Source of the DNA: Guillardia theta CCMP2712
Taxonomy: Eukaryota; Protista; Cryptophyta
Direction of reading: 5' to 3'
DNA length: 64,000 bases
NCBI RefSeq assembly: GCF_000315625.1
Contig: NW_005434652.1
Location: 758,091 to 822,090 of the forward strand
Made by a program: the position numbers and the translations under genes. Positions 3,001-29,454 of this stretch are shown here, in pieces. The number at the start of each line of letters is the position of its first letter. Positions within the stretch are counted from its first letter, which is position 1. The notes beneath the pieces were generated by a model that saw only the letters and a program-made list of their open reading frames with translations, was not told the origin of the DNA and did not search any database.

Positions 3001-6000
3001 CAAGCTGAAGTTTTCATCCATCACAAATGAGACGCCGGTTGTCTTCATCAACTGCTTCCAATGCCTTTCGCGCATAGCAGGATGGTGCAGCTCCTCAACC
3101 AGAGGTAGCGATGTCTGCATGTTCTTCACAGTATCCTCCAAACCCTTGTATCCTGGCCAGTTCTTTAAATTCTTGTTCATCCCTTTCACATGCTTTGCAA
3201 GAGTCTTGCATGCTTCACTGAGGTACTCTACATCAATTTCATCCCATCTCGTCTTCTTCCACAGATTGAATGTGTCAACTATCATCGAAATCATGTCCCA
3301 CAATTCCTTCAACATTCGTGCTTCCTTCTCGCACTGCATGGCCTCTCTATACTCGATGACATAAAGCTCAAACAACTCCTGCAGCTCATTCAATCTCTTT
3401 GCATCAGTGATAAGCTCTCGCACACTTCCCAACTGATTCTTTTCATCTCTCGGTCCATGATGAACACGATCAATTGTAGCGTACGAAATGTCGTATTGTT
3501 CTGTGAAAGTGAAAGGCATCTCTTTCTTGAAGTATGCAAAGAACTCCGCAACACGCTCCTCGAATTCTTTGGACTTCTTCTTTAGTTTTTCTGCTTCTGC
3601 TGTTTGAGCTTTGCTGTGCTTCTCTTTGGTAACTACAGCTTTCTTCTTCAGCTTATCCCATGCCTGAGGTACATGATCCAAGGCTTCAAGAACAGGTTCT
3701 TCCACTGTAATGTTGTACTTCTTTAGCAATGAACAAGTCTGTCTCAAAGGCTCAAACATGTTGTCGATGGCCTCGGTTCTTCGACGAATTTGAGTGAGAA
3801 AATTCATCACTTCAAGCAAAGAGTCTTGATCACTGACTTCCATGTCTAATTTCTGATCTGTTGATTCAACGAATGAGGATACATCTTGCACCGAGGTGAT
3901 TACTCTGTTTAGAAGAAACTCCAAGAATTTATACGACCACTTGGAGATAAGTGTTGTCAATGAATTCTTGACAGGGCGAGCATCAATTTTGAGCCATCCG
4001 ACAATTTTGGTAGCAGGAAGCTCCCTTACTTGGTCTTCAAGACTCTTGTACTTGATGATCTGCTCCTCAAAAGCTTCCAACGATGGAGATGATGCACCTT
4101 CGGCAAATTTCTGCCATTTATGGAACTCTGGAGGATCTTCGCCATTCAAGAACAGATTGAAAACTTCGTTGATGTCATGCCTCCACAAGAAAGAAAACTT
4201 TTCAAATTCTTGACGAAAGTCTTCACAATCTTTTTCGCTAATTGCAAGGTTTCTACTCACTTGACTGGTTACAAGACGAATAGAACCATTCTCATGCATA
4301 TCCGCAAGATAGTCGCCATCCTCTTCTGGTGTGTCAATACGAGCTACTAGTGTGGAAATATTGATAAACTGATTCAGCCATCCAGTGACCATATGTCTGA
4401 TTCCCTTTCCACTTGCCTGAGATACCATTGGAGGCTCAAAATTCACACTTTTCCCAACCAGCTTCATGTTGACTTCAATAAGAGGAGCCAGTTCCTGATT
4501 TGCAATTTCCTCTTTGTCCATCTGATTTCGCAGGTATTGCGCAGATTTGACAATTGCAACAACCAACCCTTCAATGATGATGTCATTCACGTAATCAACA
4601 TAGGCAAGCCATTCCGGCTTGCTCCGTGCAATTGCAATAACTTTGTTCGATGCATCCAAGTGCTTGTGAAGCTCTTCGCCACCTTTCTCAATAGTTTTCT
4701 CCCTATTCTTCATAAGGGTGAAGTGAATTTGTTGAAACTCGTCCACAGTGTAGGTCTTTCCAGCTTTCCTATCCATCATAACATTTTCAGACCATGTATT
4801 TAGAACAGATTGGGTTGATGCCACGTTGCTCTTAATATCGGTCAAAATAGCCTTGGTCTCTTTTACCAATGACATTGCCTGAGTGATGAAATCCGAGATC
4901 TGGTTGCTTTTCCAATTGAGATGTTTTATACCTTTAAGAAGAACTTTGTCGATCCCATCAAGCTTCTGCTGGATCAACGGCCTCTCAACATCAAGAACCG
5001 TGTCAAGGATTGAGTTATAAATGTTGACAATCAAATCAAGATTTCCAGTCTGTTGACGATAAGTTTCCGCCATAGAATATATCGTCATTGCAGATTGAGG
5101 GACCTCCAAGCCCAACAACAAGAAATATTTGGTTTCACGGAGAAGACAGACTAAGGCAGGATCAAAGTTGACGTACACCCAAGATGTGTTCGGATCACGT
5201 CTCAAAAGAGACTGCTTCAGTTTCTCAGCAGAAGTGTTTTCAATCTCCAAAGCCCATTCTTCTCGGTGTTGGCGTTCGTATTCCTGTTGAAACTATTATC
5301 CTGGATTCAAACAATGTGCCAGAAAAAAATCTCACCTGGAGACTATTCAAGATAGCAGAGTAGGCACGAATGCACTCTTTTCCTTCCTCGCCTGGCATAG
5401 CGAGCTTAGCGAGAGGAAATTATTCAAACTCGATCACTTACTATCAAGTATTGACTTGTTCATAGCCTTTAGTCGATTCATCGGTTCCTGTTGAAGGAAT
5501 CGTAAGGGCAAACAACAGCCAGACATCAAAAATACCTGAACTCTCTCCATCAATCCTCGCACCCACGTCACCGCTCCGGCTCTTGGAGGAGCATTATCAT
5601 TGATAGGAGGGTTGTCCTTGAACATGACAAATATCTCCTGAACTTGTTTTAGATCCATGGCGTAGGCATTCAACAGATCTGCATTCTTCTTTTCAAGGTC
5701 TGCCTGTATGATTTCCCTTTCCAACAAACCCTCAAAGCTGTCTAACAACTTGAACCTCATTAGAACTGTCACGCTGTCATCGAAAGCCTGTGTGATGACT
5801 GAAGCAAGCCTCCTCTCAAGTTCATTGATCTGGCAGCGAAAAGTGTAAAAGTCATCATCAAACTGCTTGGACTCAACGTCCATGATATCATATTTTGCTT
5901 CAATAAATACTTTGATAGACTGAAGGAAATCAACGTGAGTCTGTCGAACGCTGGTCGTCAACATTTTTCCTTTAGTTCCACCAATTTCAACACCACGATC

Positions 6001-7302
6001 ACCGCCTAGCTTGTTAAATTGCAAAATGGTCTGCATCAGATCCAAAACATCGTGGCAACGTTCGAGGAATGAATCTAATCGTGAAAAAAGAGCTGAGTTC
6101 TGAAATCTCCATGGATTTGAAGGACATTCTATGTTTGCTTTGCTCTTGTAGTCGAAGTATGCGCTTTTAAATGCAACCCCAACCTTCAAGCACAGCTTTA
6201 GATTATCAACAGCGTCTTGAGGTTCTTCAATATTCTCGAAAAGAGTCGCACCAGATACAAAGTTGCAGGCTTGTGAGATCAAAGTGTTACATAATTCTCT
6301 CAAAATGACAACAAAACGAGCTGGCGTATTGTAAAATTTTGAATTCTTCCATATCAAAAGAAGTGTATGCATGGTCGGTTTGAAATGTGGAATTAAATCT
6401 TGGAATTGTTCAGCTCCAAGCATGTTGACATATTTGACCATCGGCTCCAAGTACACAAGATTATCGTTTGCCTCCATCCTTGCCTGTGCTACTTCTTTGC
6501 ACAATCGATTGAACGCGGGAAAATAGGTGCTTTTGGTGACCTCCAGGACCTTGACAACTTTCCTAATCTTTTCACCAACAAGTTGATTGTGCAAAGAGTT
6601 CAAATTCTCTGCCTTGTTTTTCCAAAATTCTAGTTCGACTTCTGGTCCAGGATTTCCTTGCTTGAGCGCACTTTCAGGATCCATCTTCAGAATATTCTTG
6701 ATTTGCTTGGTCCACATGACAACTGCAGATTCCAGAACATGAATTCTATCTTTGTCCCTTCCAGCTGCATCCATCAGCGCTGCACCATGATTTGGTGGTA
6801 AAGGCAAAAGGGTTTTCCCCTGCGTGTTGCCGATAGTGATGTACGTTTGCGCGAGAAAGCGATGAATACTTTCGGTCACCTCTTTCGTGATCACTTCTGG
6901 CCAGCCTTCTTGGTTCCTTGGGTTAGTCAAAAGAGGAAAATAAACTTCTTGCGAGATAGCCAAGAATTGCTCAAGTGGCTGCCCAACAAATTCACAGAAA
7001 CTCATATCTTGAACAAAGTTTTCCTTGGAAACGGATCCATTGCTCTTCAACAAATAGATCGCCTTTGTTTTGAAATTTTGAGGCGGAGAAGCTGTCACAA
7101 CGCATTGATCTTTCGATTGCAAGTATATCCAAAGCAATTTCTCTGAGGGATCATCGAAAAAGCCATTGAGCAGCTTTACACCTTTTTCATCGTCCTTGAT
7201 TCGCTGAGCGATTTCGAGTTTACAGGGAAGCAGCGTGGAAGTCTGTTCGCTGATGTAATCGATTCGGGGATCAGAGGGCTTCGAATGTGACTCGTCTCCC
7301 AT
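1..7302 (-). CDS. Axonemal outer-arm dynein heavy chain, 5' part (tail N1/N2, AAA1, AAA2); multi-exon, runs off the window
   Basis: ORFs 5434-7302, 2131-5250, 1180-2112 and 747-950 join through ~50-nt GT-AG introns (e.g. 5488-5535, 5392-5441). Motifs: [33 protein letters not shown]1 [26 protein letters not shown]2 [32 protein letters not shown]. Confidence 0.96.
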
Positions 7303-25990: not shown

Positions 25991-27359
25991 GACCTAGGGG
26001 GGAGCACCCCTCCACCCCTGAGGGGTAAATGCTGGACCGGTTGTCTGTGATTATAGTCACCGTACCGGTCAAAGAAGGAAACAGGGATAGAGACAGTGAG
26101 GGTAGTCGAATTGCAGGATACTCTCTTGGTTGCGTGTACTCCAAGGTCACCAGTGCCCATGAGATCAGATCTCCACGAAGGTCTAGAACGAGCGCCACCA
26201 CGGTAGGGTGGGTGGTTTTGTGTAGGACCCTAGGGGTGATCCCGACACACTCAAAGGCTTTGTTGGAATGTGGAGGGGTGGTAGTCGTTGAAAGAGCAAA
26301 AAATATATGGGTGGTTTAGGGTCATGGGAAGGTGGAGCAAGGGGTTGGTTCATGGGGGATCAGATCTTCTATGTCCCTTTCCTTGTGAAAATAATGAGAG
26401 GTGAGGGCGGGAAGTATGGAGGGTCTTAAAACGGGTTGAACTCCCCCGTGGTGGGTGCTCGAATCTGTTTGTGTGAGTGGGTGGGGTAGTTTATCAAGCT
26501 TTCAGGACCCTGAATAAAAATACACTAATAGCGTGACGTGTGCCTGAAGTTCACTCACAAGATAGGGGGTGGGGTCAAAGTTCCACGGACATTCACAGAC
26601 CATCCGACTTCTGTGCCAGCCTGGCCAGGTGTCACAGGGAGAGGGTGGGGTGGTAGCCCTGCGCAACCAAGGATGCTTCCACCAGGGCACTGGCATTCTA
26701 GTCACGTGATCAAACAGCCGCGTGACACACACCCGGCGAGGGACGTGACACTGTTTGGCAAAGTTCTGCCCTTCCGGGCCCGCCGGGGGATACCGGACCT
26801 CGCTCGGAGCAAACTGCAAGCAGCACTGCAGCACAGCGGAAGATCCGAGGCCGGGCACCGTAATGCATATGCTCACGAGTCAGCATGTCCCGTCAGACCC
26901 GGGCCTTTCTTCCCATCATCCGGCGCCAGCACTGATGGCCTCTTACAGGATGATGCGTTGCGCTTTCTGTGGTGGCGTTGGCGGATCGCTCGGCGAACAA
27001 GGAAACGGCAGCGCTGGATGATGGTCTCACGGCCTCGCAAGACGTCTCACAGTGAGGTGATCCGACTTGCCAAGTTGTAAACGCATCCGGTCCAGGATCT
27101 TTCCGAAGTTCGCCGTGTCAGCTCCGAAGCCTCCCTGTCCTTCCGAGCGGTGCTATCATCGCAGGTGCGTTGAACGGTTCCCGGAGTCCGGTACTGACTC
27201 TGTGATGATGCGTCACCCGAGTCTCATTCCTTCGGTCCTGCGCGCAGTTAAGTGAAGGTATCACGGTTAATCGCTGTCTTTTCTCTTCTCGCCGTTTGGC
27301 CTGTCGCACGACACTGACAGTGTCAGGGTGCAAGCCTGCGGCCCCCTCTGGAATTGGTG

Positions 27360-29454
27360 CATTCCATGGCATTTACTAATGCCCAATTATAAATTAATAT
27401 CCTTTTAACAAACACTTGTACCTGTTAATTTGATCATAAGCATACAGTTTTTAGTCAATTTTGTACCAGAATGATTTGTACCACTCAGTACTCTTTTATA
27501 TTTGTTTTAAGCATTTGAGTTCCGGCTTACACGCCTCTTGGCTGCTCTCTACCCTGTGTACCGGTATGTTTGTCTGATATGGAGGGGGTAGGGCTATTCG
27601 TATATTTCGATACACGCTCATGAAATCTTATTAGTGTCAGCCATTGACGAGTGTAGTAAATCTAGCCAATAAGTATTTTTGTTTTCAAATCAAGGAGTCG
27701 TATGCCAGCTAGCAACGGCAATCTTTTTTTTCTACACCGGTTGTTTTATATAGATACCTACCCCATGTCTATAGGGTGCCACCGAAACACAGGTCCCCTT
27801 GCCCCCGATCAAAGAGCAAATAAAAATTCATTAAAAATCCTGAGATCTCCATTGCAAGTATCCCTCCCCTCCTCCTTCCTGCTCTTCTCCCTCCCTCCCT
27901 CCCCCCTGCTCCCCTCCCTTCCTCCCTGCTCCCTCCCTCCCCCCTGCTCCCCTCCCTCCCCGTTGCTTCCGTTTCCCTTGCGCTCCAGTTATAGACACCA
28001 AACAAATGAATCTTCACCGTCGTGTATCAGCAACAAATGGAATTCAGAGAAGGCGAAGGCAGGAAGATTGCGATACATTCTTGGAGCAGGAAGAGACTTG
28101 TGATGAGTCAAAGACACCTGAAGATTTGAAGCTTCGAATGATCCTGCATACGTCAGTTGATGATCGAGACTTGCGCAGGATGTACTGGAAAAAGCCAGGC
28201 AGTAATTTGAATATTATGCTTGAGCCTGGCACAGGGGTTCAATATCAGTGTGAAGATCACAGGGGCGTTGAAGTGAATCGACTGGGGATGATCAAATCGC
28301 TGCACTCAGATGCACAGGTTGTCGAAGTGTACATCATGTACAATGGAGTCCTCTTGGAACATGTAGACGAAACCATTATAACTAATCGAGTGCCCTGTGT
28401 GGCCCTGAAAAGAATTTTGAACAAAGTTGGAAACCGTGATTGTTATCAATCAATTTACAAGGATACGGATGAAATAAATGTCTCCATGCTTCTCTTCCCC
28501 ACAACTGATAAAAACATTACATTCGCAGGAATGATATTCAATGGAGACTCTACCTTATGTCTTAGCTCGCTGGTTCCGATACTGAGAAGTCCTGAGGGAA
28601 GTTCATTCACATCCGGCATTCATGGCGTTGAATAGTTCATCGATCTTACACTTGCGATCTATTTGCAATCAAGTTGCCTACACGACTGACATGCCTTATG
28701 CTTATGTGCTTGGTTGACACAGAGAGGAGGAAGTATGGGTCTTGTAGAATGCCAATCAAAACAACAATCAATTGCCTAATCAGAGAGATCCTTTACGAGA
28801 AACAATCTTGACACCAAACAACTCTACAGTCAGAGATGTGCTCGAAGCTCAATCATACGAAAGAGGGTTGTGGATGCTTGATCACCAAAAACGAGCAATT
28901 CTCCATCTTGCAATGAGCATCAAATGGATTCGAAAACAGCCCTAGGCTCTGGAATCCATGGCGATGCTGATTCCTACAGCTTCCTTTGAAAAACAAGCTC
29001 GAGCTGTTTGAAACGTCGTCTTGCAGTATGCCGCAAAAAGTACAAACATTCACACATGATCCAACCTTGGATGGCCTGGAGCTTGAATACGATGAAAGAG
29101 CCATTGGCTGAGAGCCATCTGGGATTCAAACAAACGCCGCCTGCGCCGGCGGGTGCGGATGCAGCAATGGGGGAAGGGGGAGGGCAGGCAATTTGGTTGT
29201 ATATGCACCCCCCAGGCGTGTAAAAGCGTGTAAGGTCAAAAATAGTTTTAATGTTTGAAACCTTGTTGTTTGGAGGAAGCAAGAATACTTGTAAACCTAA
29301 AACTGCTCGACACGGTCCCCGATTCAAACATACTTTCAACCATTATCGAAGTTTCTGGTACAAATTTTCAGTGCGCCGACCATTCAAAAATCCTGGGCTG
29401 AAGTACCCCGCTCGAAAATGATCAAAAGCGAGCATTAGAAAATGCCATGGAATG
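27360..29454. mobile_element. TIR-bounded DNA element (~2.1 kb), apparently non-autonomous
   Basis: Left CATTCCATGGCATTTACTAATGC (27360-27382) and right GCATTAGAAAATGCCATGGAATG (29432-29454) are inverted with 22/23 identity. Subterminal inverted 12-mer TTTGTACCAGAA (27460-27471) / TTCTGGTACAAA (29353-29364). AT-rich ends interrupt a GC-rich intergenic block. Confidence 0.8.
28006..29110 (+). pseudogene. Intronless cargo ORF in the TIR element (209 aa open, 28006-28635; BAH-like), followed by disrupted coding-like sequence
   Basis: LEPGTGVQYQCED..RLGMIKSL..VVEVY..LEHVDETII..CYQSIYKDTDEINVSML resembles the BAH-domain pattern. After 28635 all frames are broken by stops. Confidence 0.45.

Follow-up and report, generated by a model that had tools for sequence, protein, structure and literature searches.

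Which kind of transposon leaves behind a 2,095-bp element that has well-formed inverted ends, yet neither a visible transposase nor a target-site duplication (TSD)? The question is raised by positions 27360–29454 (forward strand; C22:785450–787544) of a 64,000-nucleotide window, by which is meant the whole stretch of DNA analysed (C22:758091–822090), in the cryptophyte Guillardia theta CCMP2712, the assembly of which comprises 87.1 Mb in 669 contigs. We consider it probable that the element is a defective copy, moved in trans, of a distant RAG1/Transib-like lineage of two-gene transposons with near-blunt integration. This reading draws on a longer relative with the same ends and two convergent genes, on the predicted fold of the larger gene's product, and on the exact empty sites of related copies. 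As far as the sequences found can tell, the lineage appears to be confined to Guillardia, Hanusia and environmental contigs.

The 2.6-kb family and its two-gene relative

The window element is bounded by 23-nt terminal inverted repeats (TIRs), which lie at 27360–27382 on the plus strand (CATTCCATGGCATTTACTAATGC) and at 29432–29454 on the minus strand (the same sequence with T for A at position 16), and which are 96% complementary, the A/T pair at position 16 being their sole mismatch. The 23-nt end pattern has 51 matches in the genome as opposed to 0 for a reversed control, and the inverted-end structure is far beyond chance. The TIRs thus stand as they were described in the original prediction, which a model had made from the letters of the window, and the further genomic copies that it proposed to look for exist, with 28 matches to the 141-nt 5' end and 26 to the 140-nt 3' end at 82–100% identity, mostly at least 92%. 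Seventeen complete copies were extracted, 13 of them 2,616–2,621 bp long and the others 2,095, 2,436, 2,631 and 2,952 bp, and this 2.6-kb family numbers about 25 copies in all. Since the copies are 97.6–99.3% identical to one of their number (L060), the family is young. The window element aligns with the 2.6-kb copies over its full length at 98.2% identity, a single 526-bp gap excepted. The 2.6-kb elements lack a transposase gene and retain a truncated variant of the second gene discussed below (ORF-B), which is open in most copies. The window copy is therefore non-autonomous, as had been proposed, with an extra deletion of 526 bp, and no DDE motif could be seen in it because the transposase gene is missing there. 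Within the family, a sub-lineage of three copies (on C106, C191 and C30; L067, L068 and L070) has T at positions 11 and 16 of both ends, and its ORF-B remnants have three in-frame TGA codons common to all three copies, so that a dead ORF-B was still being mobilized.

Longer copies with the same TIR, the existence of which had been suggested as a further check, are represented by a unit of 5,028 bp on contig C307 (locus L072, 501–5528), which was located via an end match without a 141-nt partner and has the same 23–25-nt ends as the 2.6-kb family. It contains two convergent open reading frames (ORFs), namely ORF-A, which encodes 881 aa on the plus strand (L072 887–3532), and ORF-B, which is open for 415 aa (378 aa if counted from its first ATG) on the minus strand (L072 3710–4957). 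Convergent transposase and partner genes inside inverted ends, the arrangement that marks RAG-like two-gene elements, are thus present at this locus. Another 5-kb copy, at 99% identity, is present on C319; the match to its ORF-B is broken into a 96% and a 98% identical part, a split suggestive of a frameshift. Compared with the 5-kb element, the 2.6-kb family is 96% identical over the first 373 bp, 89% over the ORF-B region, 79% over the intergenic stretch and the last ~55 ORF-A codons, and 77% over the outer 70 bp at the other end.

The two genes travel as a pair well beyond these copies. ORF-A has about 59 matches in the genome, including many paralogs at 23–52% identity with open frames of 750–1,050 aa, and ORF-B has 51. 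Most of these paralogous loci were compared by coordinates only; on that basis ORF-B lies directly downstream of ORF-A and on the opposite strand (tail-to-tail) at a minimum of 19 loci (two each on C307 and C19, and one each on C319, C389, C100, C276, C105, C17, C56, C47, C31, C285, C154, C340, C72, C9 and C242), among them pairs just 23–28% identical to the query. The tail-to-tail pair was confirmed on sequence at one locus (L082), where ORF-A is 37% and ORF-B 38% identical, and on two overlapping metagenome contigs (L083 and L084; Ga0172373_10058536 and Ga0172376_10105138). To judge from these loci, every diverged lineage examined has retained ORF-B next to ORF-A. For the distant paralog on the two metagenome contigs, which probably end before the element does, a search for a terminal pair gave nothing, and CATAGCGTTG ends, which belong to another inverted-repeat family, were absent around the ORF-A loci examined. 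The ORF-A product of the metagenome contigs clusters at a minimum of 90% identity with a G. theta protein; hence, Guillardia-like DNA is present in that metagenome.

Three types of end were aligned (5'; 3' of the 2.6-kb family; ORF-A side of the 5-kb element), and three parts are kept in all of them while the rest diverges. These are the terminal 23–25 nt; a AATTTTGTACC block ~85–100 nt in, which occurs twice at the 5' end and at the 3' ends sits closer to the tip by ~10 nt; and TTACACGC ~170–230 nt in, which is doubled at the 3' ends. Judging from this pattern of conservation, the three parts are likely protein-binding sites.

ORF-A, its predicted fold and its constant partner

The original prediction had called the family hard to place, and sequence searches with the two genes of the longer relative bear this out. 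When ORF-A and its family (13 members) were compared with Pfam, no transposase family appeared at E up to 1, the matches being coiled-coil noise only, and PDB sequence searches, including one with a 13-member family profile, gave no match. A word search with ORF-A returned a single protein, 48% identical, from Hanusia phi. Out of 1.84 billion representatives, HMMER returned 27 proteins; the ten of these that were looked up are from G. theta, H. phi or environmental sources and are all 'hypothetical', and there was in addition one weak Schistosoma match. ORF-B had no Pfam or PDB sequence match. Taken together, Pfam, PDB phmmer/hmmsearch, the word search and HMMER placed neither ORF-A nor ORF-B past cryptophyte hypothetical proteins; the family members in public protein sets are all unnamed, and we found no paper in which Transib or RAG-like elements are connected with Guillardia or cryptophytes. 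Relatives of ORF-A and ORF-B include P0039 (UniRef A0A6U5XZA0_GUITH, 881 aa) and, from H. phi, P0001 and P0029 (EukProt). The protein sets that contain these were, we assume, derived from Guillardia and Hanusia transcriptomes; if so, this would suggest that the ORF-A/ORF-B genes are expressed.

It is the predicted structure of ORF-A that points to RAG1 and Transib. The ESM Atlas supplied an independent lead, with RAG1 RNase H, ZnC2 and ZnH2 clusters at scores up to 0.90. An AlphaFold (AF2) model built from the family alignment has a predicted local distance difference test (pLDDT) score of 85–94 over residues ~340–845, and when it was compared with the PDB by Foldseek the top 48 matches were all RAG1, amphioxus BbRAGL or HzTransib of Helicoverpa (best E 2.3e-9), the next family being the P element at E 0.08. 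In VIA-align comparisons, the model gave Z 18.7 with RAG1 (409 residues, root-mean-square deviation 4.5 A, model residues 304–857 vs RAG1 480–1000), Z 18.4 with HzTransib (395/480 residues aligned) and Z 17.5 with BbRAGL, followed by the P element at Z 12.0, ISCth4 at Z 7.7 and Hermes at Z 6.7 (range 6.2–6.7 over both fold comparisons). A search of 48,161 representative chains, made independently of Foldseek, found Z of at least 8 with RAG1, BbRAGL, HzTransib and the P element only. On the strength of this model, in which ~410 residues align with the RAG1-type catalytic core, composed of dimerization/DNA-binding, pre-RNase H, RNase H, zinc-binding and C-terminal domains, that characterizes the Transib/RAG1-like superfamily, residues 300–857 of ORF-A are predicted to be a RAG1/Transib transposase core of the DDE type. 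The N-terminal ~300 aa are helical, with a long coiled coil at 141–179, and are poorly modelled.

The RAG1 family is defined by a DEDE tetrad together with four zinc ligands (PMC10462144). Columns conserved across the ORF-A family comprise the acidic residues E376, D403, E440, D459, D536 and E841 as well as the cysteines and histidines H496, C555, C558, C584, C612, C671, H674, H810 and H816; a CxxC lies 19 residues past D536, and a pair of histidines lies 25–31 residues ahead of E841. Among these columns, D403, E440, D536 and E841 are the candidate catalytic acidic residues, and C555, C558, H810 and H816 the candidate zinc ligands. In RAG1, C727 of the C727/C730 pair likewise lies 19 residues past D708, and H937/H942 lie ahead of E962, a layout to which that of ORF-A is similar in spacing, the residues being putative equivalents.

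As for the partner, the Pfam and PDB sequence searches gave no Kelch or PHD signal in ORF-B, and its model, of mixed helix and strand, has a pLDDT of 37. The ESM Atlas gave a weak lead to the BAH domain, at 0.80.

Junctions, mechanism and relation to known systems

Among 18 insertions, the flanks share a 1-nt repeat five times, where 4.5 are expected by chance, and a 2- or 3-nt repeat once, which is at chance level; nothing longer was found, neither a 5-nt nor an 8-nt repeat, and over the 18 insertion sites no target motif or palindromic preference rose above chance. The empty sites are more exact. The copy on C183 sits in a repeat that has at least 160 copies and a long ORF and often lies near contig ends; both 301-nt flanks of this copy are 100% identical and exactly contiguous at 17 places (e.g. 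C181 15800/15799), i.e. a duplication of 0 bp, and precise removal of the element restores an open frame of 745 codons. The copy on C106 interrupts a copia-type integrase gene, and at six paralogs its flanks overlap by exactly 1 nt (+1 bp), the reading frame being restored solely by taking out 1 nt. Finally, the 5-kb element lies in a 332-bp repeat on C307, in which neighbouring units read caag-a-ctttt whereas the filled unit reads caag, then the element, then ctttt; this junction is either −1 bp or a unit polymorphism. The window element itself is flanked by AATTGGTG on the left and ACTCAGTG on the right, with no direct repeat, and no empty site was found for it, its left flank ending in a high-copy repeat (27235–27348) and its right flank being unique. 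The original prediction had offered two options for the family, no TSD or a decayed 8-bp TSD. The missing TSD is genuine: because there are exact empty sites at 0 and +1 bp and the copies are nearly identical, decay is refuted, and the first option stands while the second falls. Nor did the flanks and genes of the other copies reveal the combination that would have made this a known type, i.e. ordinary 8-bp TSDs with a standard hAT or P transposase, neither superfamily having gained support.

On the reading that we favour, the 5,028-bp relative (C307, C319), the ends of which are identical, is the most likely source of the enzyme that moves the 2.6-kb family in trans, and the window element would keep all of the cis parts needed, namely the 23-nt inverted ends and the TTTGTACC and TACACGC motifs inside each end. 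ORF-A, probably together with ORF-B, would bind the ends and the subterminal motifs, excise the element by the nick–hairpin route of RAG and Transib, and join both 3' ends of the element to target phosphates that lie almost opposite each other, with a stagger of 0–1 bp. ORF-B may be a required cofactor, analogous to RAG2 with no homology to RAG2 implied.

A number of points weigh against this reading. Pfam, the PDB profile and HMMER over the 1.84 billion proteins gave no sequence-level link from ORF-A to RAG1 or Transib; the tie is one of predicted structure, and the catalytic and zinc-ligand assignments, made by motif and spacing, are putative. The ORF-B model, at its pLDDT, is unusable for fold assignment, and that ORF-A moves these ends is something that we infer. 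Furthermore, ~770 bp of the 2.6-kb family have no counterpart in the 5-kb element, and the shared parts are 77–96% identical, so that, on sequence comparison, the 2.6-kb family did not arise from the 5-kb element by simple deletion. The junctions also vary (+1, 0, −1), a pattern that end-joining explains no worse than a fixed stagger does. This leads to the best-surviving rival, namely that ORF-A and ORF-B excise the element blunt, in the manner of RAG signal ends, and that the end-joining machinery of the host then seals it into double-strand breaks that have arisen by chance. Besides the heterogeneous junctions, this would account for a copy on C75 that possibly has 12 extra bp of filler and a changed first base, and for the 2.6-kb copy on C307, at which ~40 bp of the 332-bp repeat may have been lost; however, the first case is judged against paralogs of only 89% identity and the second adjoins an assembly gap. 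It would also suit a 98-bp block that occurs just twice in the genome (L060:103–200, i.e. C2:37668–37765, and C28:677894–677991), directly abutting the 5' end of an element copy both times while the sequence beyond differs; this block has the look of flanking DNA that moved with the element in a single transposition, or of the product of an aberrant cut. Yet the best-documented insertion is perfectly clean at its 17 empty sites, and all 18 copies have intact CATT..AATG termini bar one base, whereas random end-joining usually erodes more. On account of the intact termini and the clean best case, we rank near-blunt strand transfer ahead of host end-joining, which we regard as unlikely, though a serious contender.

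Far less probable is the proposal that ORF-A, as a host gene or a domesticated one, only happens to lie between these ends, the family being moved by another enzyme. It has in its favour that the 2.6-kb family is unlike the 5-kb element over much of its length. Against it, the 5,028-bp unit that precisely encloses ORF-A and ORF-B has the same 23–25-nt ends and is inserted in a tandem repeat, the 2.6-kb copies keep ORF-B and the ORF-A tail, and the ~59 ORF-A matches include many diverged multicopy paralogs, as is typical of transposases. Hardly any weight attaches to the idea of an ordinary hAT, P, CACTA-type or classic Transib member with decayed or misread duplications: although the P element is the next-best fold match and the D..(19)..CxxC after the second aspartate of ORF-A presumably resembles CACTA-type enzymes as well, the copies are too young for decayed duplications, the exact empty sites are 0 or +1 bp, no Pfam transposase family appears at E up to 1, the Z scores for Hermes (6.7) and the P element (12) compare with 18 for RAG1/Transib, and the ends start CAT, not CAC.

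Among known systems, RAG-like transposons (RAGL or ProtoRAG, including BbRAGL of amphioxus and AanRAGL of Aureococcus; PMC10462144, PMC9435367) likewise have inverted ends around two genes, of which the larger encodes a DDE enzyme with the fold predicted for ORF-A. The gene pair is convergent in ProtoRAG and in vertebrate RAG1/RAG2, as are ORF-A and ORF-B, and the ends of RAG-like transposons have two conserved parts, as here; with their several parts and slight asymmetry, the ends of the Guillardia family are loosely reminiscent of heptamer–spacer–nonamer signals. In contrast, the Guillardia family has no detectable sequence similarity to RAG-like elements and inserts with 0 to +/-1 bp as opposed to their 5 bp. 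Its ends start CATTCC (CATTCCATGG being the first letters) and not with a CAC heptamer as in Transib/RAG1-like elements, in which a second element follows after a spacer in an often asymmetric layout; a second conserved element, TTTGTACC, does exist here ~85–100 nt in. ORF-B gives no sign of the six-bladed Kelch fold, usually with a PHD, of the RAG-like partner. HzTransib (PDB 6pqx/6pqn) shares the predicted catalytic-core fold, and Transib is likewise a cut-and-paste element with inverted ends and a DDE enzyme that has a Cys/His module. However, a Transib element has one gene only and duplicates 5 bp of its target (PMC10462144), whereas ORF-A is about twice as long, has a ~300-aa helical/coiled-coil N-terminal part, always comes with a partner gene and is not recognized as Transib by sequence. 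The 5-bp target duplication made by Transib, RAG and RAG-like elements alike (PMC10462144, PMC9435367) is replaced here by 0, +1 or −1 bp.

Outside this group, a fixed AAA|TTT site is the target of Spy. This member of the PIF/Harbinger group is a eukaryotic cut-and-paste element that inserts without a TSD (PMC4122938). Spy encodes a PIF-type transposase, whereas the Guillardia enzyme has a predicted RAG1 fold; moreover, the 18 target sites of the Guillardia family have no common motif, and there is no PIF/Harbinger Pfam match. P elements have ends that start CATG, make an 8-bp duplication and contain a single gene. The P element/THAP9 type is the second-best fold match to ORF-A, far below RAG1/Transib, and a Pfam scan of ORF-A found no THAP domain or other Pfam family. 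As regards hAT, there are no 8-nt repeats and no hAT Pfam domain, and the Hermes fold scores lie far under those of RAG1.

Whether the family amounts to a deep-branching sister lineage of Transib/RAG1 in Guillardia and its relatives, in which the enzyme of RAG1 fold has a permanent tail-to-tail companion (an accessory protein that is unrelated and may read chromatin) and integration is blunt (0–1 bp), is a stronger claim for which we see the chances as evenly balanced. To our knowledge, the relatives described so far all make 5-bp duplications, and the partner, where present, is RAG2-like. The cryptophyte lineage combines the same predicted enzyme fold and the same convergent layout with an obligatory, apparently different partner and with essentially no target duplication; it may therefore serve as a point of comparison for why RAG-type enzymes recruit cofactors and for what sets the target stagger, and it would give a function to dozens of G. 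theta 'hypothetical proteins'. The enzyme pair RAG1/RAG2, on which vertebrate antibody diversity depends, is held to derive from a transposon of the Transib type after the gain of a partner gene (PMC10462144, PMC9435367). If the sister-lineage claim is true, Guillardia would hold an independent 'RAG1 plus partner' solution outside animals, as well as a natural variant that shows the active-site geometry of RAG-type enzymes producing another target stagger.

Parts of the window copy and neighbouring repeats

Inside its TIRs, the window element has a subterminal inverted motif of 15 nt (27457–27471 and 29353–29367; 93% complementary), which contains the perfect 12-mer TTTGTACCAGAA; this motif and the mirrored inner motifs were rightly noted by the original prediction. 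At the 5' end, two direct copies of the TTTGTACC motif lie at 27457–27485 (plus strand), in the block that is conserved in the three end types while its surroundings have diverged, and are candidate transposase-binding sites; at the 3' end, one TTTGTACC motif lies at 29353–29367 on the minus strand, inverted relative to the 5' copies. Farther in, the 5' inner motif CTTACACGC (27526–27534, plus strand) is mirrored by GCGTGTAA twice at 29216–29233, where two TTACACGC copies occupy the minus strand, a motif of which the 5-kb element likewise has two copies at its ORF-A-side end.

Between these ends, a C/T-rich low-complexity tract (27860–27975, plus strand) precedes the ORF-B remnant; the same tract has an assembly gap in the C183 copy, the extra 336 bp of which are mainly Ns. 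The ORF-B remnant (28006–28478, plus strand) corresponds to the N-terminal ~160 codons and is 78% identical in aa to ORF-B of the 5-kb element, the tblastn match running from window position 28000 to 28500 and covering ORF-B residues 36–206. The open frame at 28006–28635 (209 aa) is a fusion that continues out of frame past the 526-bp deletion, the junction of which lies at 28478–28479. Columns 1467–1992 in the alignment of 2.6-kb family copies are absent solely from the window copy. A spliced intron, as would imply an RNA intermediate, was ruled out as the origin of this gap, the borders of which are not GT-AG and have 1–2 nt of microhomology; such a private deletion is typical of abortive gap repair, not of splicing. 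Beyond the junction, at 28483–28613 on the minus strand, lies a remnant of the last ~45–55 codons of the transposase gene, in which tblastn matches ORF-A residues 826–871 at 55–72% identity, and the same ORF-A tail is found in all 2.6-kb copies.

Some of the host sequences are repeats in their own right. The host repeat of the C183 copy (L030:764–1498, L002:1643–3139 and at least 160 other places) shows 100% identity between copies across the 600 bp that were compared. It has an open frame of at least 745 codons and no Pfam domain, clusters near contig ends, and could be either a family of subtelomeric genes or an element of very recent origin. The 332-bp tandem repeat on C307 (L072:1–500 and 5529–6028), with units 99.4–99.7% identical, hosts the 5-kb element and, ~26 kb off, a 2.6-kb copy, and might act as a favoured target or as a safe harbour. 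On C282 (L078:1231–2589), a 373-bp fragment of the element's 5' end is followed by an unrelated 452-aa ORF that gives weak Pfam noise only and, by eye, resembles a Crypton-type tyrosine recombinase with a zinc-finger-like N-terminus. In the window, a separate small high-copy repeat occupies 27235–27348, 11–22 bp to the left of the insertion and outside the element; a first look gave 256 candidates for it, many of the matches being 57–70 nt long at 85–88% identity.

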